A model generated the notes under the pieces. That model had not been told where the DNA came from, ran no database searches, and was given only the letters and a program-made list of their open reading frames with translations. A stretch of DNA of 64,000 nucleotides, taken from Neoechinorhynchus agilis. Lineage: Eukaryota > Animalia > Acanthocephala. The DNA lies in assembly GCA_051530055.1 (NCBI GenBank), contig CM121341.1, forward strand, positions 18,392,784 through 18,456,783, read 5' to 3'. The translations under genes and the position numbers were made by a program. Below, piece after piece: positions 7,193 to 55,766 of the stretch (positions are counted from its first letter, which is position 1; every line of letters begins with the position of its first letter).

Positions 7193-8916
7193 ATGTATTC
7201 CAATCTTGACAATGAGGCAATTAATAGGTTTCTTAAATCGCTTCCTAGCTTGGCTCAATTGGCGCCTACTGGCGCTCTTAATCTGCCAAAACGAATGGGT
7301 GCCCTGGACGCTAGTATGATAACTGATTTAGGTCGTAGGACAGACCGGTTGGATCGTTGCTGTGATTGGACAATGCAATTGAGTCGAAACATGACTCGAA
7401 TTGATGGTGACGATGAGGAAGGTGAATTCACGTTTCTGGATCAAACTAAGATCAATAGACCAACTTATGGAAGACGTGGGATGATTCGTGGTCGAGGTCG
7501 TATGTATACCCGTCCAAATGCGCTTGCAAGTGGACTCGGTGCCGGTGGCGGTGCCCAATTGAAAGCCACAAAATCATTAATCAATCTTGAACGAGAACGG
7601 GAACGTCAGTATTTGAAGATTCGAAAGCAGTACAACTATAGAACCGGTGGACCGGGTCCTGGTGCTCCTGGTGGAACTGACCGACCTCAAGTTCTTAAAC
7701 GCGAACCATCAATACAAATAAAACCAGAGTGGATCCTTAAAGAAGAAATAAACCTTCAGCAATTGAATCGACTGAATTTACACGTCGCTAATCCGGTTGA
7801 GCTTGCTGAATGTGGCCAGATCGGTTGCTACAACAGTCTTTTTGATAGCACGACCACGAAACGAGAAGCTAAATTGGCCAAAACGGATGTATTGCCTCTT
7901 AAAGACGAAACGACGACGGATGACTTAACAATTAGATTGACCAATGTCCATTTGGGTTTGTGCAGAACACATCTAATGAGTCAAAGTCTTTCAAAATGGA
8001 CATGTTGTCAAATAGAGCACTATGTGACCACCACGCAAATGTCTACATGACCGATTCCATATTGGCGACGCTTATGTGCGCCAATCGCAGTGTTAATCCG
8101 TGGTATTTAATAGTCGATCGGTATAGTGGCAAACTGTTTTTCGACAAACCAAAGGACTTTCAAGTTCTTACTGTGAGTGAAACTAGCTGGGATCCACCAG
8201 GAGATTCCCCAAATGCTGGAATTAATGCAGCTCAGAATTTATGCCGAGAAGCCGTCGAGGTTAACCATAGGTTTCTCCAACAAGTCACGCATGGAACCGC
8301 TCGTTTACGCCTTAAAGATGGCCCCGTTAAGTACTTAGATGGATCTATTCCACAAAGCTCACTTGGATACAAGTATCGGGAGTTCGATATTGGAAACGGG
8401 ATCAAAGTGATGGTCAGGTGCGAAATACACGGTTACGTTGAACCTCGATTCCTCGCCCACATCCGCGCTCTTACAGAGTGGGATTCTCGCTACAGTGACG
8501 GAATCGACTGGAAAAGCAATCTAGATACGAGGAGAGGAGCTGTGCTAGCCACAGAGCTTAAAAATAACGCGTTTAAATTTGCCCGATGGACAGCAACCGC
8601 TCTTCTATCCAATGTTGACAAGCTCATTTTGGGTTATGTGAGTCGGGAAAATCCAATGGATAGTACCAAACACGTGATCCGAGCAGTCCAACATCTTCAA
8701 CCAGCCCAATTTGCCCGACAAATCAATCTTAACATCGACAATGGATGGGGTGTCCTTAGATTCCTAGTGGATTTCTTTTTAAAGGACGGCAAAAGACCCG
8801 CAAAATATATTATTTTAAGAGATCCAATCAAACCAGTCATAAAAATTTATCTTGTAGAAGAAGACGAAGAGGACCACGACGATGCTGAAAAACGCACAAT
8901 AGAAAATGCAAATTGA
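7193..8916 (+). CDS. EIF3D: Eukaryotic translation initiation factor 3 subunit D; join 7193-7933, 8014-8916
   Basis: DRLDRCCDWT, TTTDD, TDSILATLM, KLFFDK, WDSR..DWKSNLDTRRGAVLATELKNN, LGYVSR; two ORFs in different frames joined by removing 80 nt. Confidence 0.95.
7934..8013 (+). other. Putative non-canonical (AG..AT or AT..AG) TIR-bearing intron in EIF3D
   Basis: 80 nt between TAGA direct repeats; inverted repeats 7937-7954 and 7992-8011; removal gives TIRALCDHHANVYMTD, colinear with the conserved VIRKLAKTQGNVFATD. Confidence 0.8.
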
Positions 8917-9369
8917 TGTTAAAATATCAGCTCGTTAATTGGATTTAAATTCTATTTTTCGTTTACTTTGCGATTTTAGTGCTTAAAATGCAATTTGCGG
9001 CAGTGTTCATGTAAAGAATTAGAGCTCCGTGAAATATTACAATTCACAAAAGTTTTATCCGGGGATTATGATCATCACAATGACAACTTTTAAAAAATGC
9101 ATGAGCAATTTAAAAGATTGGTTCTTATGGAAATGTCATTTCAACTTTTTTGATGACGACCATTTTTAATCCGAAATCAAAGTCCCCATCTAAAACATAG
9201 CGCTCCGAAATGTTGTAGCTCAAAGACGGTTCTGATTAAAGTTTTAGTGAGGGTTGTGTTTAAAGATCGCAGTTTTATCTCAACTTTTCGCCGTTGGACA
9301 AACATTCCATCAATCACATCTTTTAGCGCTGAAGTCCAACGAGACATGCGAAATATTGGGAAAGGGAAT

Positions 9370-9926
9370 TGATAAACTGATTTAGGACATCCCTAAATCG
9401 GCTTTTTGCTCTTCGGACATACTGCCACACCGATCTCTTACATCAAAGAAGTTATTGAATCACTTAGACTCTGACAACGATATTTCGTCTCGGCGTGGCT
9501 TCATGTCAAGAAGGAAAAGCCGAGGAAGGAGATGTTCTAAATCAGAATCAATAGAACCGGCTTGCCAGTAAAAAGATTTTAGAATTGATCGCTCACTCTG
9601 AGTTATAAAACTGGCCGAGTTTGTACATTCCGTAATTGTGCCGAGGAGGTCAAGTGGACTTCAGCCCTGATTTCCTTTTTCTGGGTGGGTGGATTCAAAT
9701 CCACGATAGCCGATGACGAACAACCAAAGGGGACAAAATACCGCTGAAGGGAAGAGGAAACTCACAGATGAGTCCCGCCTCCTGTGGAAATATCTAAGAA
9801 TCCGGAGGGATGCGTCACTTCTCTAATGTAAGAGATCGGTGTAGCTTCATGCCAAAACGGAAAAACCAAAAAGCCGAGAAAGGGGATGCTCTAAATCAGA
9901 ATCAATAGAACCGGCTTGCCAGTAAA
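9370..9926. mobile_element. Cluster of MITE family with TA|CTGGCAAGCCGG termini
   Basis: ATCAGAATCAATAGAACCGGCTTGCCAGTA occurs at about 9541 and 9896; inverted AAAGCCGA..GGGATG subterminal motif at about 9385; internal module shared with 53035-53200. Confidence 0.6.
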
Positions 9927-10086
9927 AAACATTTGCGAATAATAAATTAACCATTATTTCTTCAATCACCAAACAAGATACACCTGTGAACAACTTCTTT
10001 ACAACCACTAATTCTATAATATATTTACAAAAAAGAATAGAATTTCATATTTTCACGGAAGTAACGAAAACGAAAGAATTATGTTT

Positions 10087-10858: not shown

Positions 10859-11055
10859 TTTCGCTTCCTTATTTTAAGTGCCAGAAACATAGCCATTGTC
10901 ATGGTTACATTTTTTCTAATATAAAGGATCCATGTTTTACTTGAATCTAAAAATGCTTTGAAGCTTATCGCTAAAAGAAGTCGCTGTGACTTTCGCGAAC
11001 GAAATCAACCTAAAGAATAGCTTTCGCTTGTGGAGAATGACATACACATTTCAGA

Positions 11056-12122: not shown

Positions 12123-12147
12123 TAGCTATCAATGAATACATTTTTCA

Positions 12148-12392
12148 TATCGTCATTAAATTTAGCTTGTCCCTTATACCCGGCTTATTTATTTTTTAGT
12201 CCTACAGCCAAACCAATTACATCAGAGAAGTGATATAACCACATAGTCTCTAATGCACGGTTAAGAGTTTGTGCACCCCTCCAGATTCTCAGATACCTTC
12301 AGGATTAGAGAATATGTGGTTATATCACTTCTCTGATGTAATTGGTTTGGCTTCATGCCTAAAAAAGAGACAAGCTAAATTTAATGACGATA
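12148..12392. mobile_element. TA-flanked MITE with nested inverted repeats
   Basis: TA|TCGTCATTAAATTTAGCTTGTC ... GACAAGCTAAATTTAATGACGA|TA; inner ~45 bp arms AGCCAAACCAATTACATCAGAGAAGTGATATAACCACATA. Confidence 0.8.
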
Positions 12393-12499
12393 TAAAAACA
12401 AACCGGATTCTCAGTAAAAAAACCTTAAAATAGAATACCTTTTTCGTTAAAAAGCCAATGTCCACTATTAAAATATGATTTCTATGCGTGTGGTACCGG

Positions 12500-17151: not shown

Positions 17152-17304
17152 TATTCTCAATGGCGAATCGTAACACACTCGTGTTTTATTGAAATCAACT
17201 TTGTTCGCAAGTTTGTACAATGCTTGAGAAGGAGGCTGAGGCTTAAAATTTGCAATGAAGAGTTCAATAAAACTCGAGTGTGTTACAATTCGCCATTGAG
17301 AATA
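17152..17304. mobile_element. TA-flanked palindromic MITE
   Basis: TA|TTCTCAATGGCGAATCGTAACACACTCGTGTTTTATTGAA ... TTCAATAAAACTCGAGTGTGTTACAATTCGCCATTGAGAA|TA. Confidence 0.8.
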
Positions 17305-19551: not shown

Positions 19552-19692
19552 GTGAATTCGTCAACTCTCAATATAATCGAAGGCTAAAAGATTGTTTAGA
19601 TCTATGGGTACTTTCAGGACACACAACGATATTCGACAAAGTCAGTAACGAAATCTGTTTGAGAATTAAAATCATCTAAAGAATTATTTGTT

Positions 19693-20158
19693 TCACTTTA
19701 ATAGCATTCTGACAAGATCTTCGAATCTCGCGTTTCCATCAGCATCCATATCAAGCGACTCTATAAGTTCCTTGAACTCCTCGCCTGCAATTTTTTCGCC
19801 CCTCGATGTCATTGCATGTCTCATCTCATGCATATCTACTAATCCATTCCCCGTTTTTTCGAACACTCTAAACCTACAATTTATCATAAACGGGTTTGGA
19901 ACTTGAGAATTACCGTAACGCTTCTCGGACCTCGTTTGCGTTACTCTTGCTATTCTGCAATAAATTTTCAGCGATGTCAGAAAACAAATTCCAATTTATT
20001 TTTCCCTTGTGTTTCGAAATAAGCTCCGCGATGTCGAGCTGGGACGGACATAGTCTACATGACCTTAGTGCTATACCGAGATCGGACGGAAAAATAAATC
20101 CATCGCGATCTCGGTCTAAATATGCGAAAACTTCTTTAAGATAATTTCTTTGGTCCAT
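19693..20158 (-). CDS. Calmodulin-like / myosin light-chain-like EF-hand protein; GT-AG intron 19868-19913
   Basis: DRDRDGFI, spliced EALRVFEKTGNG, GEKI..DMDADGNARFEDLV. Confidence 0.85.
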
Positions 20159-20955
20159 TAGATCGTTCCACGGTGATATTTCAATGGCTTAGTCTCTTCA
20201 AAAGCATAAAATTATACTACTTAAAGCTATGCAATTGCCTTTTATTTGAGACAATCGAATGATAGAAAGGGAAATGAGTTTTACAGAATGTTAATCTAAA
20301 AATGTCGAAATCCAGCTTGAAAGGCAAATAAAGGATTTTATTTTTACGCATGAGTGGAGTTTCCAAATCATATGATTTATTTTCGTCATTTCGTAAATCA
20401 GAGCCCTATTGGTAGAATTCTTAATATAAAATTGTGAGGATGTAAAGAATATATTTCTTACAAATTTTCACAAATAGCTTCAATTTCGAAATCGTTCGAA
20501 TTATAATTGACCGATTTTATGGTTAACAAACAGTCAAAGTTTATCTCCCGTGAAGCATAAAGCTGAAAACTTCCTGGTTCGGAGATCAAAGTAACGATTC
20601 TTTTTTGTTCTTGGATGGTTGTATGAACAGCGTTTAGTTTACTGACGTTATTTTTGCATAGACCGTTCTTCCCATTGCCGAACAGTTTTTATTCAACTTT
20701 CAACTAGGTAACTAACAGATCTCCTCTGTGCTTTGATGTTTTGGGAATAACTTGGTTGCTATTTGTCAGTGGAAATTCTAGAGATTGAGCATCATTCGTC
20801 TTAGAACAATTGGATTAAAGAGTGAGGTATGAACATAAAATTCTTCAACCTTAAAATCAAACCTGGTGTATCCGAAGAAAAAATAAAATCTCGCCTATAA
20901 AATCTTCAATTTAGAACCGTTTTTTACTCCATTCGTTTCTGAAGATATTTTGAAT

Positions 20956-21103
20956 TACACTTTCGGTGAGAATAATCCCGGTCATTACATATTTTATTTA
21001 TTCAAAGCACTTGCAAACAATGACTGAAGAGGCGAGGATGCCTCGCGAAATATTTGAATAAATAAAATATGTAATGACCGGGATTATTCTCACCGAAAGT
21101 GTA
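20956..21103. mobile_element. TA-flanked palindromic MITE (second copy 40372-40519)
   Basis: TA|CACTTTCGGTGAGAATAATCCCGGTCATTACATATTTTATTTATTCAAA and a perfect reverse complement ending |TA. Confidence 0.85.
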
Positions 21104-21574
21104 ATTTTATTATCCCGAAGGACTTTCTATCGATGGATATTTTGAATTGTTGTGTAGTGGCGACAAAAAATTTTGTAAATTTATTGAATCGATATTTCAG
21201 CTCAATCCAGAGCCTTTATCAAGATTGTTAACGTGCGAATAAAACACTTTAATAATCTTGATGAATGCTCTGGATTGGGCCGAAATATCGATTCGATAAA
21301 TTTACCAAATTTTTGTCGCCACTGCACAACAATCATGAGCAGTTTCATTTTTCAAGATATTTTGAATTTCAAACAATTATTCCCGTTCTCATAAAAGTAA
21401 AAGCAGATTTTTTAGTTAAATATCGAGCAGCACTTTGTGTCTCGAGGCTAAAAAGCATTGGTTATCGATAGTCTGATTATGTGTGTGTTTTAGAGGGTAC
21501 TTTGGTAAGTTCAAGTGGACTTTAAGGTCCCTTTGATTTAGAAAGTTTTTATATATTTTTTAAGGAAGACGACC

Positions 21575-22262
21575 CTACACGTCTTTAAAATACTCAAGCG
21601 ATCCCTTTGGATCAGGTTTGATTGTTCTTTTATTCTTATCTTCCGACCAATTTGCAGGACATACCTCACCATGCGTTTCTACAAATTGAAACGCTTTGAC
21701 AATTCTTAGAACCTCATCCACACTGCGTCCAACGGGAAGATCGTTAATGGTGATATGGCGAATGACTGACGTTGGATCAATCACAAACAAACCTCTTAGA
21801 GCAATTCCATCGGTATCGAGTAGAACACCGTAGTCCCGTGAAATGGACTTGTTAAAGTCTGATAGAAGCGGGTACTCTAATTGACCGACACCGCCCTGTT
21901 TTTCACTGAGATTTGTCCATGCCAAATGCGAAAAATGAGAATCGGTACTGATGCCAACCACTTCAGCGTTGATGTCCTTAAATTCGTTTAATCGCCTATT
22001 AAAGGCCACTAACTCAGTCGGACAAACAAACGTGAAATCAAGAGGATAAAAAAATAAGACCAAGTATTTGCCTTGGTAATCACTCAATGCAATCTCCTTA
22101 AATTCACCATTAAGAACAGCCTTTCCGGCGAAACTCGGAGCTGGATGACGCACTTGAGCGTAGAGGCGAGATGGAGTGGCCGAGAATGGTCTCCAGTTCC
22201 TTAAAGATGGATGCAGTGGTGAAATGCGATCCAATTAATCGACTGGCAAGATGGGATAGCAT
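21575..22262 (-). CDS. PRDX3: Typical 2-Cys peroxiredoxin, mitochondrial type; copy 1 has +1 frameshift near 22203
   Basis: [21 protein letters not shown]; N-terminal MLSHLASRL transit-like peptide lies out of frame because of an extra A relative to copy 2. Confidence 0.85.
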
Positions 22263-22919
22263 TGAACAAACTTTAATATATCTGTAAAGAAGTTGTTCAT
22301 TTGTATATGTGTTCTTTTTAGTGATGAGAGGAATAGATATTGATCTAAATATTTCGTCCGTCTCTTCAGACTTCCTCATTTTGGCATTATCCGGAGTTTT
22401 AGACTATAATCGGCCTTATTTGATGTTTAAGTGTTTTATTCGCACTTGAAGTGAGGCGAACGAAATATTGAGGACAATAAACCAATACCCATTCTTCCCG
22501 TTAATTATATCCAAAAATGAGACGAAGTGAGCAGAAACCACACAGAAATCAATCGAAATTTCTTCACTTACGGATGCGGAGGCGTATACAACAGTCGAAG
22601 CAGTTCTTCTGTGTCACGACGTAGATATTAAAAAGTTCGTCCTGATCGCTTTAAAGAAATGGCCTGTGAAACGAGGGACTCCAAAAATATGTTCATCAAA
22701 TATTCAGTAAACGGAAATAGCCCGATAGTGATGGCAGAATTTCCATAATAAAAACTACAAGAAAATCAGATTTTTTAAGACTGCCTTAAAATTGTATGTG
22801 AATTAGACGGGGGGATAAGTCTTACTTTGCCAACCAAAATATAGCGGCCTTCCTATTCTCTCAAATAGATGAGGTTCTATTTAAGGAAGATGTATTTGAA
22901 TAACCTTATCACATAGACG

Positions 22920-23550
22920 ATCTCACCTCATCAATCAATCACCACCCCACCTCTCCCTCTCCTTAACCTCTAACGAAATCACCCGCATCAATGATTTCTG
23001 CACCAATCACAAACGCCACTTGAATTTCTTTACATGCTTGGAGTTTATTCCCTCACTCTCTCGTAATCCAATATCCTATCCCGATCTTCCAAATGACATC
23101 CGACGAGTCATATCCCTCAGAATTCTTTGTCTTCAATTTCAGTCAAATCTGAAATGAGACTCGCACAGTTAACTTTCTCTCAAACGCCTCCGCCACTTAA
23201 CTCATTTAACCGATCTTGCCAAATTTTACAAGAGCTTTATTTTTCCCTCCCTCACCTACGGCTATCCCGTCTTTTACAACATGTCCAAATCACAAATTTG
23301 TCGTCTTGAAACGTTTCAGCACAGTTGATTTTCCTCCTCCTGCTCACCGAATACATCTATAAATGTTTCAGGAAACAATCAAAGCGCCTCTCAACACTAC
23401 CACCATAATTTTTACAACATTTTATAACCCTTTTTACATGAGGACAACATTCGTAATTCCAATTCATTTCATCCTCCTAAATCTCGCACATCTCTCTACC
23501 TTCGCTCCTTTCCCCACTGCCCCACTAGAACGGACATACAGAAATTAGAT
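22920..23550 (+). mobile_element. CR1/L2-like LINE 3' remnant (better preserved copy at 42330-42990)
   Basis: Copy 2 reads FRILGIQFQSNLKWDSHI..YHLKRLRHLG..FYYSFIFPSLAY. Confidence 0.7.
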
Positions 23551-23821
23551 AGACCGTCACGAACTGATTTCCGAGCACCAACTACCGAATATTCCCACCC
23601 ATCTACGGCAAACAATGAATATGTTTATTAAGAAGCTGAAAGGAGCTTATTTTATAATGTTTTGGCGGAATGCCAAGGCGCCCCTTGGATTTCTCTTTTA
23701 ATCAACAATTTACGCATTACAAATCTAAATTCTTAAAAGGGAAGAAAACACTCATTTTAATAATCTATGGGAAACATGCGAGTAAGTTAAACATTGAGCC
23801 CTATCGGCAATAATAATAGGT

Positions 23822-23905
23822 GGAATTTATTGATTCCGAAATTTCGGCACAATCGTAATCTTAGTAGGGCACAAGATTGTGCCGAAATATTGGAATAAAT
23901 AAATT
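23822..23905. repeat. Short hairpin related to the TIR of the 15655-16260 element (also about 43260-43343)
   Basis: GAATTTATT..TCCGAAATTTCGGCACAATC ... GATTGTGCCGAAATATTGGAATAAATAAATTC. Confidence 0.6.
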
Positions 23906-24109
23906 CTCTTAAATTTTATGCAAGATACAAACATGAACAATCGAATCGTCAAACAAATAATAATAGGACTTATTGAGAAACAAAATGCCTCCAATGTGCG
24001 ATACTCAGATATATGCTTTTATTCTTTAGACCAGGATTTGTTTCATTGTCCATTTCGCTTTTAATGTGAAAGACCCAAAGTACTATTTTCTTACTTGTTC
24101 AATTAGGAG

Positions 24110-31450: not shown

Positions 31451-31469
31451 CTGTAGAAGCTTTTGAATA

Positions 31470-39476: not shown

Positions 39477-40990
39477 AGATCGGACGGAAAAATAAATCCA
39501 TCGCGATCTCGGTCTAAATATGCGAAAACTTCTTTAAGATAATCTCTTTGGTCCATTAGATCGTTCCACGGTGATATTTCAATGGCTTAGTCTCTTCAAA
39601 AGCATAAAATTATACTACTTAAAGCTATGCAATTGCCTTTTATTTGAGACTATAGAATGATAGAAAGGGAAATGAGTTTTACAGAATGTTAATCTAAAAA
39701 TGTCGAAATCCAGCTTGAAAGGCAAATAAAGGATTTTATTTTTACGCATAAGTAGAGTTTCCAAATCATATGATTTATTTTCGTAATTTCGTAAATCGGA
39801 GCCCTATTGGTAGAATTCTTAATATAAAATTGTGAGGATGTAAAGAATATATTTCTTACAAATTTTCACAAATAGCTTCAATTTCGAAATCGTTCGAATT
39901 ATAATTGACCGATTATATGGTTAATAAACAGTCAAAGTTTATCTCCCGTGAAGCATAAAGCCGAAAACTTCCTGGTTCGGAGATCAAAGTAACGATTCTT
40001 TTTTGTTCTTGGATGGTTGTATGAACAGCGTTTAGTTTACTGACGTTATTTTTGCATAGGTGGATATTGAACAAGAGACCGTTCTTCCCATTGCCGAACA
40101 GTTTTTATTCAACTTTCAACTAGGTAACTAACAGATCTCCTCTGTGCTTTGATGTTTTGGGAATAACTTGGTTGCTATTTGTCAGTGGAAATTCTAGAGA
40201 TTGAGCATCATTCGTCTTAGAACAATTGGATTAAAGAGTGAGGTATGAACATAAAATTCTTCAACCTTAAAATCAAACCTGGTGTATCCGAAGAAAAAAT
40301 AAAATCTCGCCTATAAAATCTTCAATTTAGAACCGTTTTTTACTCCATTCGTTTCTGAAGATATTTTGAATTACACTTTCGGTGAGAATAATCCCGGTCA
40401 TTACATATTTTATTTATTCAAAGCACTTGCAAACAATGACTGAAGAGGCGAGGATGCCTCGCGAAATATTTGAATAAATAAAATATGTAATGACCGGGAT
40501 TATTCTCACCGAAAGTGTAATTTTATTATCCCGAAGGACTTTCTATCGATGGATATTTTGAATTGTTGTGTAGTGGCGACAAAAAATTTTGTAAATTTAT
40601 TGAATCGATATTTCAGCTCAATCCAGAGCCTTTATCAAGATTGTTAACGTGCGAATAAAACACTTTAATAATCTTGATGAATGCTCTGGATTGGGCCGAA
40701 ATATCGATTCGATAAATTTACCAAATTTTTGTCGCCACTGCACAACAATCATGAGCAGTTTCATTTTTCAAGATATTTTGAATTTCAAACAATTATTCCC
40801 GTTCTCATAAAAGTAAAAGCAGATTTTTTAGTTAAATATCGAGCAGCACTTTGTGTCTCGAGGCTAAAAAGTATTGGTTATCGATAGTCTGATTATGTGT
40901 GTGTTTTAGAGGGTACTTTGGTAAGTTCAAGTGGACTTTAAGGTCCCTTTGATTTAGAAAGTTTTTATATATTTTTTAAGGAAGACGACC

Positions 40991-41677
40991 CTACACGTCT
41001 TTAAAATACTCAAGCGATCCCTTTGGATCAGGTTTGATTGTTCTTTTATTCTTATCTTCCGACCAATTTGCAGGACATACCTCACCATGCGTTTCTACAA
41101 ATTGAAACGCTTTGACAATTCTTAGAACCTCATCCACACTGCGTCCAACGGGAAGATCGTTAATGGTGATATGGCGAATGACTGACGTTGGATCAATCAC
41201 AAACAAACCTCTTAGAGCAATTCCATCGGTATCGAGTAGAACACCGTAGTCCCGTGAAATGGACTTGTTAAAGTCTGATAGAAGCGGGTACTCTAATTGA
41301 CCGACACCGCCCTGTTTTTCACTGAGATTTGTCCATGCCAAATGCGAAAAATGAGAATCGGTACTGACGCCAACCACTTCAGCGTTGATGTCCTTAAATT
41401 CGTTTAATCGCCTATTAAAGGCCACTAACTCAGTCGGACAAACAAACGTGAAATCAAGAGGATAAAAAAATAAGACCAAGTATTTGCCTTGGTAATCACT
41501 CAATGCAATCTCCTTAAATTCACCATTAAGAACAGCCTTTCCGGCGAAACTCGGAGCTGGATGACGCACTTGGGCGTAGAGGCGAGATGGAGTGGCCGAG
41601 AATGGTCTCCAGTTCCTTAAGATGGATGCAGTGGTGAAATGCGATCCAATTAATCGACTGGCAAGATGGGATAGCAT
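40991..41677 (-). CDS. PRDX3: 2-Cys peroxiredoxin, mitochondrial type, intact and intronless
   Basis: Continuous [28 protein letters not shown]. Confidence 0.92.
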
Positions 41678-44600
41678 TGAACAAACTTTAATATATCTGT
41701 AAAGAAGTTGTTCATTTGTATATGTGTTCTTTTTAGTGATGAGAGGAATAGATATTGATCTAAATATTTCGTCCGTCTCTTCAGACTTCCTCATTTTGGC
41801 ATTATCCGGAGTTTTAGACTATAATCGGCCTTATTTGATGTTTACGTGTTTTATTCGCACTTGAAGTGAGGCGAACGAAATATTGAGGACAATAAACCGA
41901 TACCCATTCTTCCCGTTAATTATATCCAAAAATGAGACAAAGTGAGCGGAAACCACACAGAAATCAATCGAAATTTCTTCACTTACGGATGCGGAGGCGT
42001 ATACAACAGTCGAAGCAGTTCTTCTGTGTCACGACGTAGATATTAAAAAGTTCGTCCTGATCGCTTTAAAGAAATGGCCTGTGAAACGAGGGACTCCAAA
42101 AATATGTTCATCAAATATTCAGTAAACGGAAATAGCCCGATAGTGATGGCAGAATTTCCATAATAAAAACTACAAGAAAATCAGATTTTTTAAGACTGCC
42201 TTAAAATTGTATGTGAATTAGACGGGGGGATAAGTCTTACTTTGCCAACCAAAATATAGCGGCCTTCCTATTCTCTCAAATAGATGAGGTTCTATTTAAG
42301 GAAGATGTATTTGAATAACCTTATCACATAGCCGACGATCTCATCAGTCAATCACCATTCGACCCTCTCGTTAACGTCTAACGAAATCGCGCACATAAAT
42401 GATTTCTGCACCAATCACAAACTCTATCTAAATTTCTCTAAATGCTTCGAGATGATCCCCTCAATCTCCCGCAACCCCATATCCTACACGGATGTTCCAA
42501 ATGACATCCGACGAGTCACCTCTTTCAGAATTCTGGGTATCCAATTTCAATCAAACTTGAAATGGGACTCGCACATCACTCTCTCCATCTTACGCAATAC
42601 CTTTAAAATTTACCACCTCAAACGCCTCCGCCATTTAGGAATCCTTTCGCCCGATCTCTCCAAATTTTATTACAGCTTTATTTTTCCCTCCCTTGCCTAC
42701 GACTATTTCGTCTTTGGCAAACTGTCCAAATCGAAAACCCGTCGCATTGAAACGTTTCAGCACAGTTGATTTTCCTCCTGCTCACCGAATACATCTATAA
42801 ATGTTTCAGGAAACAATCAAAGCGCCTCTCAACACTACCACCATAATTTTTACAACATTTTATAACCCTTTTTACATGAGGACAACATTCGTAATTCCAA
42901 TTCATTTCATCCTCCTAAATCTCGCACATCTCTCTACCTTCGCTCCTTTCCCAACTGCCCCACCAGAACGGACGTACAGAAATTGGATAGACCCTCACGA
43001 ACTGATTTCCGAGCACCAACTACCGAATATTCCCACCCATCTACGGCAAACAATGAATATGTTTATTAAGAAGCTGAAAGGAGCTTATTTTATAATGTTT
43101 TGGCGGAATGCTAAGGCGCCCCTTGGATTTCTCTTTTAATCAACAATTTACGCATTACAAATCTAAATTCTTAAAAGGGAAGAAAACACTCATTTTAATA
43201 ATCTATGGGAAACATGCGAGTAAGTTAAACATTGAGCCCTATCGGCAATAATAATAGGTGGAATTTATTGATTCCGAAATTTCGGCACAATCGTAATCTT
43301 AGTAGGGCACAAGATTGTGCCGAAATATTGGAATAAATAAATTCTCTTAAATTTTATGCAAGATACAAACATGAACAATCGAATCGTCAAACAAATAATA
43401 ATAGGACTTATTGAGAAACAAAATGCCTCCAATGTGCGATACTCAGATATATGCTTTTATTCTTTAGACCAGGATTTGTTTCATTGTCCATTTCGCTTTT
43501 AATGTGAAAGACCCAAAGTACTATTTTCTTACTTGTTCAATTAGGAGTCACAGTTCCTGCTGGAGCCGAGGCGGCCGTGCATACAGCACGAGCGTATGGT
43601 CGGAAGTGTATCCATAAGGGAACGGCTATGGTCGAGCGTGACATGGAGAACGCGTTCAATTCAATATGCCGCACCGCGATGACAGAGGTTGTCCACCAGC
43701 ATCTACCAGAAATCTACCAGTACGTGTCTTTGTGCTACGACCAGTCCAGCATGCTGCTGTTCGGCGAGTTCCAGGTCGAATCAGCAGAGGTTGTTCAACA
43801 AGGTGATCCTCTAGGTCCTCTGCTGTTCGCAATGACGATCAATTATCTTGCCCACAGCTCTTCGTCAGAGTTATCGATCTGGTACCTTGACGACTGTTGC
43901 ATCGGAGGGGAGATCGACCAGCTCATCCGCGACATCAAAAACATCTCCGAAATGGGTACTGATATGGGACTATTCCTGAGAACGGACAAATGCGAAATAA
44001 TTTCGGACGACCAAGAGGAGGCATCGAGACTGCTCACCGTACTACCCGGAGCAAAAACAACTGCAATTGACTCAGCCGACATTCTCGGGTCTCTAATCGG
44101 TAACCTGTCCAACCTGGAAACGTTCCCCTCAAAAGCCATCGATCAATTGCGGCTCACTGCCTCCAGGCTCTTGCACATCGCGCGACACGACGCTCTGTTA
44201 TTACTAGGACGATGTCTGTCGCTACCGAAGATTGCGTACCTTCTAAGGACTTCATGCTTCAAGTCAGTACTCACTAGGGATTTCGACAACTGCGTTCGAT
44301 CAACCCTGTCAGAAGTTCTTATCCTACGACTGTCCGACACAGCATGGAAACAGGCGATCCTACCTATTCGATTCGGCGGTCTTGGCACTCTGAGTGCCAC
44401 CGAAGTAGCAATTCCTGCTTTTTCGTCATCGATTTCGGTCTCTTCAGACCTGGTGCTGAGAATCATCCCACCACACACTCGACTAGAGTCGCATCCACCA
44501 CCTGAACTGATTGAAGCGCACGCTTAATGGACATCAGTGTTCGGGCAGGTCGTTCCAACGGAAACAAACTCCCAAAAACGTTGGACTGTCCTGCCCCACA

Positions 44601-45164
44601 CTGCATATTCTCAGCACCTTCTCTACTCATGCTCATCTCCCACCGATAGAGCTCGTCTCCTGGCAGTCTCAGCTCCACACTCCAGCGACTTCTTGAAGGC
44701 TTTCCCGATCACGGCTGTTGGCACAAGGCTGGATGACCAAGCCATCACCGTCGCTGTGGGACTTCGATTGGGCATCGAATTCTCTTTATTTTGAAACATA
44801 CATTCCAAATTTCCCATGGTTTCGCCGAACACTGAAAAACTGAATCTAACAAAAGTTAAGTAGGTCTATTCTTGAAAAAATTAGGTGTCAAAGCAAAATG
44901 TGACCACTAAGAAAGTTCCAGTGTGTTTAATACGGTAAAATTTTTTAATCCTTCTGTTGTATCCGATCTCCATCAGAGCTCAAATTTAGCAATTCTCAAA
45001 AAAACGCGTGTATTACCAACATTATTGAACAAATAAAAATTCACTCTACGAAGCATTTATTTATGAACGTAATTGAAAGAAAAAATCAATTCCCGACAAA
45101 ATATTTGAAGTGCATAACAAGCGCTTCCTGGCTACAGTGCGTTTATAAAGGTCATATTTGGCTC

Positions 45165-45521
<357 letters not shown>

Positions 45522-46800
45522 TAGGAGGAAATTCCATCTAGTTGCAAAATTTATCTAAATTGCAGTAATTGGAATGTTTATTCGTAAATTTAGAGAATAT
45601 TTTTAGATGTACTATGTTTTTGGATGGTTTAAAAACTGGTTTTGCGAAGAAACGTAGGTTTCGAAGTTGGCTACTCCAAACGTTCAAAAATTTAATTGTT
45701 CATGTTTGTTTATGGCGGCAAAATTAAGGGAATTAAACGTCGATAATGGATATTGTAGAGACTGTAATTCATTAAATGTCGCTATCCTGTACATTAAATT
45801 AAAGTCTAACTGTTAAAGTGCGGCACGTGTCCTAATATTCGCTACTTTATGGTGAGTTTTAGGTCTTCGATCTTCAATTTTGCAACATTAATTTGGTAAA
45901 TTTGCTAGTGTAATCTCGTGTACTATCTTTAATAACTTTTAAATGTTTCATATTGAATTTAAAGTAGAGATTAAAAATGGTCAAAATGTCTAAACTTTTT
46001 GTGTAGTCTTATAAGACAATGTCCATTGTGAATTCCGCAATATGCATTTAAAGACTCTACAAACACCAAAAGCTTGCAGCAGTGCCACTTATGGCCCCTT
46101 AGATTCATCGCGTCATAAACTCAATTGATTCTAATTAAAAATGGCTTAAACGGTTTCACGTCCTACATATTTGTGCGGCGATCTAGAAATTGTTACGAAT
46201 GATACTTGTATCCTTTAGTCATGAATTCTTTTTTTATTGGTTTTTATATTGCGTAGTCTTTAGGGGTGCCTTGAAGTCTAAGCAAATGTTTTTGTATTTG
46301 TCGTAAACACTTTATTGGATTTTTTAAGTAACATTAGTCGCGAGACTTCACGCACCTTATAACTACCGGAATTCATAAAACCAAGCCGATAATCAAAACA
46401 ACGCAAACTAAAATCACGGAATCTAAGATGCAAGGAGATAAATCGACTAATATTCCACCCACATTAATCCACGATCTCCTAAGTGTTGTTCGATTCTTTA
46501 TTAAACAATATGGAAACGTCAACATTGCTCCAAAAATCCAAATGACCTTCGACATGAATGCATATGGAGTTCCTGAGGTTTTCACCGCCTTAAAGGGTCA
46601 TGTAAAGTCTCTCCGCGAAAATACGGTTAGATTTATAGTGCCCTTAAAATTCCCTTTTGATCTAGATCCGGATAAGGTTAGTTTTGTAGTTTGCTTAAGT
46701 ATGAATGCTGCATGGAAAAAATCGGGCGAATCGCATATCATAATTCCTCTAATAAAAATTTCTACAGTCAACTTTCTGTAACTGTAGAAGCTTTTGAATA

Positions 46801-47406
46801 ATGGCATACACGGTATTAGAACCGGTGTCCTTAACGGAAGTAGGAAACGGAGAGCGCCCAATTCTAATAGTTGCTGAACGATCACTTTATGATCAAATCA
46901 ATGATGCCCCAACTGGGTGGAAACAAAAAGGTATAATAGGCGTTTCGAAGGAATATTATTCTCTAATATCAAAAAAATATACTGATTCGAGGCAAGCAAT
47001 AAAAATCGACGATAAATGTGATCAGAAATTCTTTTCAAAATTTTCAATAGATTTACCCGAATTAGCTTCAAAATACTATAGAATTGAATCGCTAAAAATT
47101 GAAAAAACTACGATTGATAACTCCTATGCCGTATTTTATGCTATTTCACTCGATGGAATGAGAAAGAGATACATAGTCTCTTGTCATTTCTGTGATCGAA
47201 ACGCGGATTTCGCTTCACTAAAACAGCGATTGCTCTATCAAAGGTGGTATCGGACAAGATGCAGTGCTCTGGTACCCAATGTTTTAAATGATGCCGACGG
47301 AAACGTTCTTAGAGTGCACACGATGAACTTCGAAGAAAATTATATGGATTTCCTCTATTATATATCGGAAAATCATTTCAATTGTACCGTTACTTTAGCT
47401 GAGTAA
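46801..47406 (+). CDS. Hypothetical 201-aa protein, intronless
   Basis: Intact ORF with ATG start, 19 nt downstream of the 117-aa ORF; no family recognised. Confidence 0.55.
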   Translation: MAYTVLEPVSLTEVGNGERPILIVAERSLYDQINDAPTGWKQKGIIGVSKEYYSLISKKYTDSRQAIKIDDKCDQKFFSKFSIDLPELASKYYRIESLKIEKTTIDNSYAVFYAISLDGMRKRYIVSCHFCDRNADFASLKQRLLYQRWYRTRCSALVPNVLNDADGNVLRVHTMNFEENYMDFLYYISENHFNCTVTLAE

Positions 47407-47954
47407 GCATCACGGTTGTCGTAATGAACGCATTGGAAGGAGGGTTCCAAAATAATCACTTCATATTGTCTTCTTTATGTTCGAAGAAAGTACACCTCTC
47501 AATAATTGATCTTGCCAATGGTAACATCCTTAAATGCTAATTTTGATTTAAATGTGACGAACCAGATGGAAATAAAGGGTTAATATTTGCATTAAACCAA
47601 CAAAATTGACTTTAATTGCCAAAATCTTTACTTTCAAAATTTTTTAACATTTAAAATCACTTTCATTTAGATTTATCTGGTACTCTAAGGATATGGGTGC
47701 TGAAACTCTTAATATTTCAAGAAAAGAGAAAAACGAGCTGGTTTTATAATCAACATTTTAACTTTGTAAAATAGACGCGTGCAACTATTAATCGCGCATG
47801 AATGTATATTTTATAAGACATTGCATACAAAAATGAATTAATATAAATATCATGGGAATATTTAGCCATTTATTTCTCAAATACTAATAGCGAAGAGCAT
47901 TCCACCGTTTCATTCGGTATTTTACATGTTTTATTTGACGATGAATTAGTTACT

Positions 47955-48768
47955 CTTTTCTTAATCGCCTTTACATGGGTGAGATTAATTTTTGTTACTT
48001 TCTATTTGGTTACTTTTCTTTACATTCACCACCTCCCACAAAATTCCAGCTTTTGTCCTTCCTCGACCGTCGCCATCACGCTGGCAGCATTGCCCCGTTG
48101 TACTGCCAGCGAGATATTTTGTCGAAGAAATAAGCCTGCTCTTGAGTCTCCGGTTGCCTCTCTCAATTTCTTCGAGAGATCCTTGAGCAGAGAGAGTGCC
48201 GAGCTGCCGAGCGCTCCATACGTCTCTACCCCAAAGGGGACAAAATAGTGAGCCCTCGATAGCTGCATATATTTTCGTACCTTCCTCAATTCCGCTGCAC
48301 TGGCGGCACCACCGGCGATTTCGAGCGAGTAGGGGATGTTGCTGGCTGCGAGGGTGTCCACACACGTGGCGTCCCAGAGAAGGCATTTGCCCTCCCGCCA
48401 CGGGAAGACCGAAATTCCATCGGGCCTACGGCCGTCTAGTCTGCAGAGGTGGGCGGGTTCCAGGATGTTCGGGAAGTCCACCAATATTCTCATATCTGCT
48501 AAGGAATCGAATCCGGACATTTCTGATGTCGAAAATCTCATTTTATTCAATTTTAACGATGCAATCTACACATTATACGTTTGTGACCTTGCGAACACTT
48601 TATTCCGCGTCGTATGCTCAAGTAATCAAGACAGGGCAATGATTCGGGCATTCCTCGAGTCCTATATGCACATGTTTCGTCTGGACCGTAGCGAATTTGT
48701 AGTTCTTTTCAACGCAACTCTGGCAACGGGATGCGCCGCAATATCAGATAAGTTAAAGGATTGGAAAC
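47955..48768 (-). mobile_element. Chimeric insertion: inverted CRE 3' end (47955-48477) plus ~290 bp copied from the downstream kinase-like gene
   Basis: Flanked by AGTTACT direct repeat (47948-47954, 48769-48775); 48477-48769 matches 49348-49640; absent from copy 1. Confidence 0.85.
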
Positions 48769-51700
48769 AGTTACTTAACTTTGATTTGATTCAGCGTTGT
48801 AATTTTTAGGGTATCATCTAAAATTGAGTCGAATTAGAACATCAAAGCACCATATTTAGGAATAGTGATAGCGATCGAGTCCACTCGTAAAGTATTCGTT
48901 TTATTTTCCACATCATATGCTTTTATTGGGAGCGTTAAACTGCGAACAATGATTGTTCATTACGCTCGTGACGTTACTGTTTAACTGGAGACCGAAAATC
49001 ACTCGCTTTTCTTAGCAAAGAATGTGAAAGTCTCGGCTTATTACTTGGAGAGTTCCATCAGCATTCATGCTACCGTGTTCAACTCAATGCAAATCAAGAC
49101 GGTACCTGCAGTCGATGGTTAGTGGATACGTTTGCAAAAAGGTTCACCACGTGGGGCTTTACTCAAACAGTGAATCCATTTGCGATTTACACTAAATAAA
49201 GACATCGATAATCTCTACTCATCTATTGCAAAAAAAGCACCTCCTCAAATGTTGGAATTGATGGTTTCGTGTATTGAGGCCCTAAGGTTTGCGATCATTA
49301 CTCACGCCAAGCGATTACGAAAGGGTTGGTGTCATTGGAATGTCAAATCCACCAATATTCTCATATCTGCTAAGGAATCGAATCCGGACATTTCTGATGT
49401 CGAAAATCTCATTTTATTCAATTTTAACGATGCAATCTACACATTATACGTTTGTGACCTTGCGAACACTTTATTCCGCGTCGTATGCTCAAGTAATCAA
49501 GACAGGGCAATGATTCGGGCATTCCTCGAGTCCTATATGCACATGTTTCGTCTGGACCGTAGCGAATTTGTAGTTCTTTTCAACGCAACTCTGGCAATGG
49601 GATGCGCCGCAATATCAGATAAGTTAAAGGATTGGAAACAAACGAGCGCTCTTCAGGCCAATGAACACGCTCAGCAGATCAAACAAGCCTACGATGCGTT
49701 GGAGTTTTGCGCTACGGATGATTGGTTCATCAACTTCGTGCGTCCGTTAGATAAGCAACAGTGAGAAGACGTCTGAGAAATAACTAGTATAATAATCGTA
49801 ACTGGTCTTTTAACTATTGAAATGTCTTTGTCTTTCGATTAATAAAAATCAGTCAAAGGGTAAATCTTTATGAAGATAATAAATACAATTAAATTGCGTT
49901 CCTTAATCCTTAAGTACTTTTGGATTTTACGAAGTTGTTATGTAGGTTATATTCCAATTTTGTTTTACTTTTCTTCGCTCAAGCGATTAACCAAATCATC
50001 TATTTTTGGGTTTGAGCTACATATTTCCCACTTTGTGTTTTAATTTTGTCGCTTTTTCACGTTGCTTATGTTTCGCACGAATTTCTTTGATTTACAAATA
50101 CTTAAAAGTTACTGGCAAGCCGCTTCTATTGATTCAGATTATTACATCCCTTCCTCGGCTTTTTGCCTTTCCTTCTTGAAAAAAAATTATTCGGTAAAGG
50201 TAAACCATGGATCGAACGCTGTCGCTGAATAACTGAAGCAACATTCTATACTAGTTACTATCCGTTTTTGGAAGTCATAATCCGATCCACTGCATGGATT
50301 TGTTGGCCCAGTCTGCTGAGGAAATCCACTCAAAGGGTAGCCTCGACAGGATTTTCAAGAATACACGGCATCCTTCTTGGCATGAAACCTGTGATATTAA
50401 TTAGGTGTGTAAATATCGATCAGCTCAACGAGCGTTATTTCGATCCACTATCTCGGATCTTCTTCAGCGATCTAAAACACATATAACAGGGATTCTCAAT
50501 TCACGCGTCACATAACATCCGGTGGGTGTCGCATCCTTAATTTGAAATCAGGTTTATTGCCCTCGAACGTTTCGAACCTATTGCAAACTAGTGTTGTAGC
50601 GGCACTAAAATCAATAGTGTGCCCCGTGTTTTTTGCATGGGCCACCACTGCGGAACTAATATCCGTGTTGAGAACAACTGATGATTCGTGCTCCTTCAAC
50701 CGTCTGGTGAAATTGTTGGTCTGCCCCACATAAACCTGTTCGCAACCGGAGCACGGAATTTTGTAGACCGGATGAACTCCATAGCAAGATACGAATGATC
50801 ATCAGGGAATGGCAGTTCAACGTAGATCTCTTCCTTTTTAGACTTTGTCTCCCCATTGAAGGTATGACGCACATTCCGAATGCACCGTTCGACAAGATGG
50901 AGAGGATAACCATATCGACCTGATATGTACTTTAGGTAATCAATCTCCTCGTTACACAACTTAACGTTGCTACAATGTGTAAGAGCACGATGGATGAGTG
51001 ACCTAATCCTCGAATTTTTTTTGTATTTGCGAGGTTGGGCTGATGTCCATGGCACAAGGCCCACTGGTATACCTCTCTTTCGGTACACCCTGGTCGTGTA
51101 GTTTCCACTGGCTAATCGGTATATCCACACATCCAGGAACGGAAACTTACCATGGTCCTCCTCGATCGTCCACTGAATATTGTCGTTCCTTCAGTATACG
51201 CCGTTGCGTTGTGTTCTTTTTTTCCAAGAGGGTAAAAGTGTATATAATACATCTCAACTTTTCAATTTCTTACCTCAATTTGACTCTCCTGAATACGTTT
51301 CTTTTATCTCTGCTCCATTCAGCCCATCGTCACAAGGTCTAATTTCTGTCTTCCACACATCTCTTGATCCATCTTTAATATCTACGTTTATTTCGAATGA
51401 GCTGTCTTATTCCCTTCTTAAATTTTTCTTCGAGCGCCGGCGTTTCACTGTTGCCAGTCTGTACATACGACCCAGCTTTATACATCGCCCGGCTGTTAAA
51501 AATATTGTGAAATGCCTTCTCCATTCTAACATTGATTTCATTGCTGGCGATTTCAATGACCCTTCGGCGAGGTGGTCCAAGGCCATAGTAAACTCGGTCA
51601 AACCTCGATATGAACTCTCGACATCTCTTACTCCGTCCTATCACAATATAACGAAAAATATCCACTCATTCTTAGACCTTATAGAAAATGTTTGAATTTG

Positions 51701-53034: not shown

Positions 53035-53200
53035 TACATCAGAGAAGTGATGTAACCACTTAAACTCGGATGAAACGTTAAGAGTTCGTACATCTCTCTG
53101 GACCCTCAGATACCTCCAGGAGGCGGGACTCATCAATGAGTTTCCTCCTCCCTTCAGCGGTATTTCGCCCCCTTTGGTTCTGCGTCATCGGCGACAAACC
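53035..53200. repeat. Dispersed ~160-bp module (inverse of about 9690-9830; part also in 12200-12310)
   Basis: GGAGGCGGGACTCATC..GAGTTTCCTC..CCCTTCAGCGGTATTT shared. Confidence 0.65.
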
Positions 53201-53622
53201 GTTGAAGAGAGGAAACTCACTAATTTTCACAACTCTGGTGTCCTTAAAATTAATCGTTACCCAGTTCGTTAATTGTTTACATTTCGCCAAATATTTTGTC
53301 AAGCATTTAATTTTCCTATTTTGATCAGATATTCAACAATTGAACAACTTTTCACGTGAGTAGTATCCTCTATTTATTACTGCATTTACATCGTTTAATA
53401 TCCAACCTTAGTATTCACGTTCCCTACTATTACTCTTTGGTGTTACTGAATTCTTATTTTGTAGTTTTTTCACTTTTTATCAATGGCTTTAAACCTTCCC
53501 TAGACTTTTTTCACGTATTAAAGCTCAGAAACCATTCATAACCGTTTTCAATATTTAAAAATTTTCAGTATTTTTCTACATGACCTTCATTTATCACTTC
53601 AATGTTCTCAACGACTTTTCAC

Positions 53623-55766
53623 TCAAACGGTTGACGGGCATTCAAAATGAATGAGATGAAACACTTCGTTGGCTGTGTTACGAGTGCCGACTATCCTGAT
53701 GAACACAATGGGTCTTGGTTCAAACCGAAGAACCTGCCACGATGAGCATAATTCGTCTCGCTTGTCGACAGTCATGCTCCAATCTACGCCGTTAATCGAA
53801 GTCAAAATGTAGTAAGAGTAATGCCTTTGTTCAACGTCCCATAAAAGCATACTTTGGTGCATGTTAGGTCGACTAAATGCAAAGACAAACATCTCACCGA
53901 AATGAACCGATAATATATGGTTGAAAGAGTTGAATAGTTATATCTCCATTTCCAAGTTGGTGACATGTATACCCAGAATTCCAATCGTAATTTACCCAAT
54001 CTCCATCGATCAATGCGTTGGGTTCTCTACTGACTCCACTTAAAACTGCAGCTGATCCTTTAACCGCTACGTTCGCCTTAGGAGCTACGAAAAGAAATTA
54101 AGCCTATTAGATCACGCTCTTATTACCGTTGATATCGTCAATTGTCGGACACAGTCTTTCCGGATCACGGAACTGAATCGTGAGCGGTATATGTGGTGCA
54201 TCCGGTACGATTTTGTTAATGGTAAATCGAATACATTTAGCAACCACAGATTTGGTGTAAATCCTCTGTAAGTCTCTACACACATATTGGCTATAGTTCA
54301 CAATGGTCGTAAACTCCATGTTAGTTTTCATCGAAGATTCCACGATGTATGTAGAATCCCTGTGGTAGCATCGTTTAAATTCAACAGAATCGCATTCATA
54401 AAACTTACCTTAAGAGTCCTTCCAGCTGCATTTCGATATAGTTCATGAAGCACGGTTGGCTGAAATTCACAAGTAATTGCGTTTTTCCATTATTGAAAAT
54501 GGAATCAACTGATCCGAAGAGTTCAATTAAATTTCTATTGCAAACTAAGAACACAATTAAGGTATGATCTGTATAATTACTTACTGAGTTTGGCTCTCTC
54601 ATCTGTTAAAACTTGACCATTATTAACAGTTTTGATTTCATACCTTGAGCAGATAGCATCAAGCAAGCGAGTATCATCGAAGAGACCAGTTGCTCTAACC
54701 CATTTTAAGATTGCTTTTTCGTCTATAACTGTGATTATCTTTACAAGAGATGACAATTGTTTCATTTAAATCACGGTATTATGTTGGCGAGAGATTCACT
54801 TTGGGTGAAAAAAGCGATCATGCGATTTCGCCTCATTATATCTTGAAGAACTTTCACACCCTAGGCTATTCGTCTTTAGGATATACGCAAAATATATTCA
54901 CAGTTTTAAAAGGTTCAATCGTGCACACTCAAGCAGCTTGTGGGTGGGATTCAATAATATACCACGCATATTGTGCCAATCAATCAAAAATTTTACAATA
55001 ATTGCTTCGCTTGCATAGAATGTCGAACGAATCAGAATGCTCCGGACAACTTCTTCTGATGACTTCAAAAACATTTTACTTGCAAGGATCTCTTCTGAAT
55101 ACGCGTCGATTTCCATTAAACACTTTTTCGTTAACTTTTCTATTTGCTTAAGAAAGGCGACTTCATAAATTTGAAGGGCATTAAAGCGATCAACTTTTTT
55201 CTCGACAATCTTGGACATTGCCTCAAACAAGTGTATAAATCCAAATTGATCTGCTGCGATCAACATATTGGTCGGACATAAATCCTAAAATATTCGACGA
55301 ATATGGAGTGCTGTGAACCGAGAATTATTGTACTTTTTCTATTATATGATTAATCGATCCAGTATAAGCGTAAATAAGAAGATCCCGGAAAGTACTTGTG
55401 TCGATGTCGTGTACCTCAATCTCCTCATTTGGTTTAAGAAATGATTCCTTCATTCCGTTATAGAATAAAGCGCTAAAGAAAGCTTTAAGCTCTATTATTC
55501 GACGAAAAGGTCATACGAGAAATATGGCGACCTCACGGCTAAGATACACTTATGGACTTTGAAATAAGAATTTCCGACTTTTAGAGTGGCATCACTGTAA
55601 CTGCCGTCAAATAAAGATCCTTAGATGTGTATACTATTGAATGGCTGGACGGGTAAACCAGACAAAACGAACCGATTTGCTCAAGAAGTTTGTTGCGATG
55701 TGAAGTGCCGTCCTCCGCGAATTCAATATTCTGAACAATTTGAAACTTTGTTTGTAAATTTTGCAT
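53623..55766 (-). CDS. BTBD9: BTB/POZ domain-containing protein 9 (BTB, BACK, two F5/8-like domains), multi-exon
   Basis: YSDATLKV..VHKCILAVRSPYF, YAYTG, LLDAI, NALIDGD..YDWNSGYTCHQLG, LLWD..YSYYI, FIRIVGTRNTANEVFHLIHFECP; several short GT-AG introns plus one non-canonical. Confidence 0.93.
54725..54907 (-). other. Putative non-canonical (AA..AT or AA..AG) TIR-bearing intron in BTBD9
   Basis: 183 nt between TA direct repeats; 16/19 inverted repeat (54724-54742 vs 54890-54908); in-frame stop inside; removal gives RLNLLDEKAILKWVR, colinear with RLPLMSLTELLNVVR. Confidence 0.8.

Follow-up and report, generated by a model that had tools for sequence, protein, structure and literature searches.

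Inverted-repeat insertions removed from mRNA as non-GT-AG introns in the acanthocephalan Neoechinorhynchus agilis

Genes and insertions at the locus

We analyzed a 64-kb stretch of DNA (hereafter, the window) from Neoechinorhynchus agilis (Acanthocephala), which lies on the chromosome-scale record CM121341.1 of the assembly GCA_051530055.1 (46.2 Mb, three major scaffolds; PMC12690905). The window is gene-dense and intron-poor, with EIF3D, an IAP-like gene, DAD1 and peroxiredoxin each encoded by a single or nearly single open reading frame (ORF). Three non-canonical introns were studied in all, located in the coding regions of EIF3D, a BTBD9-like gene and a gene for a membrane protein, while GT-AG introns account for 7 of the 9 transcript-verified introns. 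The initial annotation, made from the sequence alone, had proposed one coding insertion with inverted ends and a TA-containing repeat in each of EIF3D and BTBD9, and we located both, with lengths of 80 nucleotides (nt) and 183 nt. The third insert of the same class (56978-56920) was not in that annotation and was found via RNA contigs. The word "intron" does not occur in the text of the genome paper (PMC12690905).

The EIF3D gene occupies positions 7193-8916 of the forward strand (1724 nt; ATG at 7193, stop codon at 8914-8916). Exon 1 (7193-7933) is an ORF of 247 codons covering 33-234 of the Pfam eIF-3_zeta profile, and exon 2 (8014-8916), which is also supported by homologues, covers 244-531 (E 8e-97), so that profile coverage is contiguous over the junction. 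The frame is broken at 7934, after codon 247 (...TTTDDLTI), and resumed at 8014 (RALCDHHANVY...). Together with homologue alignment, the share of words found in RNA and a terminal stem, this break delimits a non-canonical intron of 80 nt at 7934-8013 of the forward strand. The insert is bordered by the direct repeat TAGA (7933-7936 and 8013-8016) and has the inverted arms TTGAC/GTCAA (7937-7941/8007-8011) and ATGTCCATTT/AAATGGACAT (7944-7953/7994-8003). In the register that places both cuts at T|A, the intron reads AG..AT, and the TAGA repeat permits five registers yielding identical mRNA. Removal of the 80 nt produces an ORF of 547 amino acids (aa) that aligns without gaps at TTTDDLTI|RALC with the EIF3D proteins of a rotifer, a nemertean, a mollusc, a lamprey and Ciona.

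Comparison with the rotifer Brachionus plicatilis revealed that the position of the EIF3D intron is mid-exon in that species, whose gene has approximately seven short introns elsewhere. The worm gene has retained none of these and possesses no intron besides the 80-nt one. Because the position is unoccupied in Brachionus and the other introns of the worm gene have been lost, the EIF3D intron would fit a lineage-specific gain in an intron-depleted genome. In the public annotation of GCA_051530055.1, EIF3D is represented by two separate genes (285 aa and 188 aa), the former running into the non-canonical intron to its stop; the C-terminal EIF3D ORF is 100% identical to NCBI protein ACOME3_004417 (CM121341.1).

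The BTBD9-like gene (BTB-BACK-discoidin) lies on the reverse strand at 53623-55766 and has eight introns, seven of which are GT-AG, as delimited by RNA contigs, the ORF and the BACK domain. The name BTBD9 is a probable assignment drawn from the BACK domain (Pfam), from our reading of the BTB and C-terminal motifs, and from discoidin-like features in the C-terminal exon that serve as a lead only; a protein search with the BACK exon found no match, owing to either a length filter or fast divergence. Three GT-AG introns are passed before the frame stops at ...RLNLLKL followed by a stop codon, and it resumes 183 nt further on. The 183-nt segment begins AAAACTGTGA and finishes TCACAGTTAT, and its arms, AACTGTGA (54905-54898) and TCACAGTT (54734-54727), adjoin a duplicated TA. 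In the T|A register, this non-canonical intron spans 54725-54907 of the reverse strand and reads AA..AT; the other allowed placements are 54724-54906 (AA..TA) and 54726-54908 (TA..TA).

Frame checks bore out the proposals that neither the EIF3D nor the BTBD9 insert has an in-frame GT-AG or GC-AG option and that retention would truncate both proteins, since the EIF3D frame breaks at 7934 and BTBD9 would stop at codon 241. The initial annotation had also suggested that both inserts could be cut in a common T|A register, with which the BTBD9 RNA joint and the gap-free EIF3D alignment agree. Its further suggestion, a shift by 2 nt so that both introns end in AG, holds for EIF3D, where the mRNA is the same; in BTBD9 it would give AAC instead of GAC and is excluded by the RNA contigs.

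The third insert interrupts a gene at 56526-57808 of the reverse strand that was delimited by RNA contigs and an ORF check and encodes a multi-pass membrane protein of 407 aa after splicing. The intron comprises 59 nt (AG..AT) at 56920-56978 of the reverse strand, with the joint running from 56919 to 56979 and an alternative placement at 56921-56979 (TA..CA), and it has no GT-AG option. Its removal merges two overlapping ORFs into one of 407 aa, whereas the kept insert leads to a stop at codon 279. Language-model features alone give a high-scoring lead that the protein is EI24-like; it has no Pfam match, a protein search gave no homologue, owing to a length filter or fast divergence, and no annotated protein was recovered for this gene in the public annotation.

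Excision from RNA

As a first transcript screen, we determined the share of sampled 31-mers from the EIF3D gene and from a stretch of BTBD9 that was present in each sequencing run. For the 1724-nt EIF3D gene, this share was 1.00 in the DNA run, 0.93 in three RNA runs and 0.97 in one RNA run. A total of 110 of the 1694 words touch the 80 nt, giving an expectation of 0.935 without the insert. The word share and the homologue alignment provide indirect but quantitative evidence that the EIF3D insert is missing from RNA. For a 681-nt stretch of BTBD9 including the insert, the share was 0.71 in three RNA runs and 0.96 in one, against an expected value of ~0.7 without the insert.

Reads and contigs of three RNA runs and one whole-genome run were then placed on 53300-59200, which contains BTBD9 and its neighbour, the membrane-protein gene. 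The BTBD9 mRNA was reproduced without mismatch by RNA contigs of up to 1806 nt. In all three RNA runs, which represent three individuals, a joint from 54723 to 54907 with long flanks skips 183 nt, leaving two ambiguous letters, and on the coding strand the junction reads CTT TTA|GAC GAA (LLDEKA). The same contigs show seven GT-AG joints that skip 40-53 nt, in line with the initial annotation, which had described the remaining resolvable introns as short GT-AG introns. The coding sequence built from the joints is 1638 nt long and encodes 545 aa without a stop. Two RNA runs contained the joined form alone, and in the third it predominated, with a depth matching that of the adjacent exons, so the insert is absent from the main transcripts, in the T|A register that had been predicted. 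The 59-nt joint was found without mismatches at a depth of 147-221 in all three RNA runs.

At the DNA level, whole-genome reads covered both the BTBD9 and the 59-nt inserts at ~15-20x, equal to the depth of their flanks, and the joined form occurred in 0 of ~740 placed reads. The genomic reads of the BTBD9 region contain the insert and never the joined form, and no insert-free allele or paralogue of this region was seen in them. Both outcomes that the initial annotation had named as refuting, transcripts that keep the insert and raw reads that lack it, were thus checked for the BTBD9 region, and neither was borne out. The Illumina DNA of the genome paper came from a pool of ~50 worms and from one single female (PMC12690905), and we take the whole-genome run used here to be one of these libraries. 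Because the inserts are present in the reads of an independent library and no joined read exists, they are not assembly artefacts and are removed at the RNA level. The BTBD9 and 59-nt inserts are thus part of the genomic DNA and are cut from RNA with single-nucleotide precision. The removal is post-transcriptional, exact and efficient, and it takes place alongside GT-AG splicing and spliced-leader trans-splicing in the same transcripts. These data support the view that the three inserts are real introns of a second, non-GT-AG class.

The BTBD9 mRNA and that of the neighbouring gene bear the same non-genomic 5' extension, which ends ...TTAAAAACTTACAAGCA and of which up to 21 nt were seen. It is joined right behind the AG acceptors tttcAG|A (55778-55780) and tttaAG|ATG (57808-57810) of the reverse strand. 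This shared extension is direct transcript evidence of spliced-leader trans-splicing. It presumably resembles the leader of bdelloid rotifers. A different 5' extension was observed on BTBD9 in one RNA run.

Common structure of the three introns

All three introns can be placed in one register, in which the exon ends in T, the intron starts with A and a purine (AG, AG and AA) and ends with A-T, and a purine opens the following exon. At their 5' ends the introns read AGATTG, AGGTTG and AAAACT, and each closes with AT. In this register, all six junctions are T|A or T|G (T|A and T|A, T|A and T|G, T|A and T|A), so that both borders fall between a pyrimidine and a purine in 3 of 3 introns. Base 1 of the intron (A) can pair with the last base (U), and base 2 (G or A) stands opposite an A. 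From +3 or +4, a stem pairs with the bases directly before the terminal AU in every case. This stem comprises 5 + 10 base pairs (bp) in EIF3D (fold z = -1.4), 8 bp starting at +3 plus extensions in BTBD9 (z = -1.55) and 11 bp including two G.U pairs in the 59-nt intron (z = -4.66), for which 0 of 200 shuffles were as stable. The folding energy of the whole intron is unremarkable in 2 of the 3 (EIF3D and BTBD9); it is the end-to-end pairing, with perfect complements of 8 and 10 bp right at the ends, that is unlikely to have arisen by chance.

When both strands of the window were scanned for T|AR...AT|R plus a stem of 5 bp or more joining two open frames, hundreds of matches resulted, and the pattern is far too unspecific for finding more cases.

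Origin of the insertions

The inserts probably began as small TA-targeting inverted-repeat transposons that entered coding exons of an intron-poor genome. This inference is drawn because a TA-targeting cut-and-paste element leaves just such traces, namely TA or TAGA duplications together with inverted ends. Such an element would enter a coding exon and a TA-type duplication would be made; the insert is transcribed with its host gene and subsequently excised exactly from the RNA. The removed piece equals the element plus one copy of the flanking repeat; therefore, the pre-insertion sequence is restored and the mRNA reads as it did before the insertion. The EIF3D and BTBD9 inserts are similar to the TA-targeting miniature inverted-repeat transposable elements (MITEs) derived from Tc1/mariner (Stowaway-like) in being short and non-coding, with terminal inverted repeats and a TA duplication. 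Unlike those elements, none of the three inserts has a second copy in the window, and no transposase is linked to them.

Free TA-flanked palindromic MITEs had been reported nearby in the initial annotation, and we found them at three places. The element at 12147-12393 has a perfect terminal inverted repeat of 25 nt with TA at both ends, that at 17152-17304 consists of TA, TTCTCAATGG...CCATTGAGAA and TA, and that at 20953-21106 has arms of 54 nt and an identical copy at 40369-40522. The proposal that the introns are introners derived from MITEs stood only in part: the inverted ends and TA-type duplication were found, but in a comparison within the window the three introns shared no sequence with the free palindromic elements, which leaves them as putative members of an introner family. 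The free elements are near-perfect long palindromes, whereas the interiors of the introns are not palindromic.

A further hairpin element of 120 nt (CTCGGCTTTT...AAAAGCCGAG) was observed at 58485-58613. Highly abundant RNA contigs originating elsewhere (depth 400-640) match both of its arms but leave the interior unmatched; DNA reads continue beyond its borders in many divergent ways, and it is ~70% related to 9388-9576. This hairpin is a multi-copy, transcribed MITE family.

Mechanism of removal and alternative explanations

Taken as a whole, the reading that we favour, by somewhat more than even confidence, is that the three inserts are true introns belonging to a second class that lacks GT-AG ends, which would have originated from TA elements and would be removed by the U2-type spliceosome. 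With regard to the removal itself, a U2-type spliceosome of relaxed specificity, assisted by the terminal hairpin, appears to be the most likely mechanism, although we are evenly divided as to whether it is the true one. It is suggested by the larvacean Fritillaria borealis, in which AG/AT introns make up one of two principal non-canonical classes and are U2-dependent. The worm's spliceosome would tolerate AR...AT ends (R, purine) as in F. borealis, with the terminal hairpin keeping both splice sites in proximity. No match to Rfam was obtained on the 64-kb window and no small nuclear RNA was found there.

Several observations weigh against this reading. First, only three introns are available, and because of the repeats, the register of the cut is not readable from the mRNA. 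Second, the pyrimidine content before the 3' end is low (0.39) in 2 of the 3 non-canonical introns, and the YAY triplet (Y, pyrimidine) of Fritillaria occurs upstream of the 5' site in 0 of 3 (ATT, CGT, TTT) and as the last three intron bases in 2 of 3 (AAT, CAT, TAT). Third, the repeat of the 59-nt intron is 1 nt only and is not TA, and no relatives of any of the three introns exist in the 64-kb window, so that their transposon status is read from structure. Fourth, a 241-nt unspliced contig over the BTBD9 insert was present in one RNA run (depth 10.8 vs. 35-64 for the spliced form), which would fit a late, non-spliceosomal removal as in Euglena, and no such contig was listed for GT-AG introns. 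The insert is therefore transcribed and, in that sample, partly retained.

The main rival explanation, which we consider possible but less probable, is a structure-guided excision independent of the spliceosome, in which separate machinery reads the closing hairpin and cuts between a pyrimidine and a purine on both sides, as has been proposed for euglenids. In its favour are the pyrimidine|purine junctions at both borders of all three introns in the T|A register, the start of the stems 2-3 nt from both ends, the absence of a clear polypyrimidine tract in 2 of the 3 introns, and the pairing of the 59-nt stem through two G.U wobbles, which are meaningful for RNA and not for DNA. It would also accommodate the finding of an unspliced contig for the non-canonical intron only, as in euglenids the nonconventional introns leave the transcript later than the conventional ones do (PMC11282704). 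However, the euglenid CAG/CTG pairing at +4..6/-8..-6 is absent, the AR...AT ends match the Fritillaria class that needs the U2 spliceosome, no such machinery is known in any animal, and three cases are too few for a consensus. A bolder and rather doubtful extension is an acanthocephalan system of RNA-level "un-insertion", in which a hairpin-guided activity, either a spliceosome subtype or an endonuclease and ligase, would cut at T|A on both sides of TA-targeting hairpin transposons and would have arisen independently of the AG/AT class of Fritillaria. If true, such a system would let a 46-Mb genome tolerate exonic insertions by the thousands, and its independent origin would point to a shared chemical constraint on spliceable non-GT-AG ends.

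An unlikely explanation is that the three descend from ancient GT-AG introns and lost their original ends through decay once the spliceosome had turned permissive, with the inverted ends having arisen or been kept as an aid to splicing. The lack of related copies of the three elements in the window, the lack of a TA duplication at the 59-nt intron and the non-palindromic interiors, unlike those of the free MITE-like elements, are consistent with such decay. In contrast, the EIF3D position is intron-free in Brachionus, the TA and TAGA repeats that permit scar-free removal are the mark of a TA-targeting insertion, and the non-canonical introns, at 59-183 nt, are longer than the GT-AG introns of 40-53 nt.

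Elimination at the DNA level, whereby the inserts would be cut from somatic DNA and the mRNA would come from rearranged genes, is largely refuted and very improbable. TA-bounded inverted-repeat elements that are precisely removed do resemble the internal eliminated sequences of ciliates known from textbooks, but the inserts stand at flank depth without a joined read in whole-genome data that, on the match of libraries assumed above, come from entire worms in a pool or from a single female, and the unspliced RNA contig shows that the 183-nt insert is transcribed. An artefact, whether template switching by reverse transcriptase over a repeat-flanked hairpin or misassembly, with the interrupted genes being pseudogenes, can practically be dismissed: non-canonical junctions with 1-4-nt repeats across stems are its classic textbook signature, but the joined form predominates at exon depth, long conserved reading frames are regained in three genes, EIF3D, as a core translation factor, shows no other frame break, and the DNA reads contain no insert-free copy of the BTBD9 region.

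Other candidates were rejected. U12-type (AT-AC) introns do not apply, as the 5' ends are not ATATCC or GTATCC and the 3' ends are AT, not AC or AG. For tRNA-type or IRE1-type splicing (bulge-helix-bulge), folds with the exon flanks put the stem inside the intron and gave no consistent helix containing exon. Translational bypassing is excluded because the RNA itself lacks the insert, and the DNA reads do not include any allele or paralogue free of it.

Comparison with known non-canonical introns

The non-canonical introns of F. borealis fall mainly into two classes, of which AG/AT is one; they depend on the U2 spliceosome and carry inverted repeats and target-site duplications (PMC13326754; PMC11282704). 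The worm introns resemble those of this species (Henriet et al. 2019; Soo et al. 2026, PMC13326754), which is likewise an animal with a compact genome, in their inverted-repeat ends, target-site-like duplications, lineage-specific positions and precise removal from RNA. An AG...AT reading is open to two of the three, and in the common register AT closes every one of them. However, GT-AG introns form the majority here (7 of 9 verified) vs. ~5% in F. borealis, the TA repeat is split by the junction here vs. a YAY triplet upstream of both sites there, and the BTBD9 intron starts with AA. Fritillaria is a tunicate, while Acanthocephala is a protostome phylum, and because the phylum differs, an independent origin is proposed. 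Paralogues of U2AF and the loss of the U12 system are further traits of the Fritillaria type. The introns work like known systems, yet by the tested features they are not strict members of the Fritillaria class.

With the nonconventional introns of euglenids, they share pyrimidine|purine borders on both sides, short border repeats, terminal pairing that joins the ends, coexistence with conventional introns and a weak hint of slower removal, namely the single unspliced contig. They differ in lacking the CAG/CTG pairing, and euglenids are protists. Excision as circles is a further trait of the euglenid type. The introners of Amoebophrya are non-canonical, with terminal inverted repeats of 8-20 nt, direct repeats over the boundaries and a predicted hairpin joining the exon boundaries (Farhat et al. 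2021, PMC7789003). The inverted-repeat ends, short boundary direct repeats and predicted end-joining hairpin are found in our introns as well. The direct repeats are 1-4 nt here (T, TA, TAGA) vs. 3-5 nt in Amoebophrya, and more than 60% of Amoebophrya introns are non-canonical, whereas the canonical spliceosome is clearly active in the worm.

Full-text literature searches returned no such report for Acanthocephala, Pomphorhynchus, N. agilis or rotifers. To our knowledge, the tunicate Fritillaria is the only other animal from which introns of this kind have been described. In a survey of 3,325 genomes, introners were confined to two groups of animals (PMC9860276). N. agilis would add a second, independent lineage of animals, and a first one among protostomes, in which inverted-repeat insertions in coding exons are neutralized as non-GT-AG introns, and the convergence of its AR...AT ends on the AG/AT class of Fritillaria would offer a comparative test of the limits on splice-site choice. 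The presence of two intron classes in single transcripts, such as BTBD9 with seven GT-AG introns and one non-canonical intron, would provide a natural system for separating modes of recognition. In addition, gene finders restricted to GT-AG break such genes, as illustrated by the split EIF3D. BUSCO values for the genome and the transcriptome are 47.1% vs. 54.9% with the metazoan set and 58.4% vs. 71% with the eukaryotic set (PMC12690905), and part of the acanthocephalan "gene loss" may be an annotation artefact.

Other features of the window

A gene at 1397-2898 of the forward strand, first taken for ALG12, has PIG-B-type glycosylphosphatidylinositol mannosyltransferases as its homologues. A fourth non-canonical intron at 1204-1675, holding a 198-nt palindrome (1206-1403), was considered for this gene and ruled out, as the conserved N-terminal motif VPDEYFQS lies downstream of the palindrome and there are at least three frame changes without room for introns. 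The homology shifts frame near 1475-1520, 1540-1710 and 2840, and the gene is either a decaying pseudogene or contains uncorrected indels. Between the two large ORFs of this gene, only one intron would be in phase, a GT-AG intron of 259 nt (2047-2305).

Large near-identical duplications were observed between 20075-25400 and 39489-44835 and between 30984-34869 and 46315-51022. They contain a peroxiredoxin gene (21575-22234 and 40991-41794), reverse-transcriptase ORFs and palindromic elements, and they represent either a real segmental duplication or an uncollapsed assembly. Finally, long poly-C and poly-G tracts in the region 45160-45530, each exceeding 60 nt, form perfect inverted repeats, and these tracts look like a sequencing or scaffolding artefact rather than biology.

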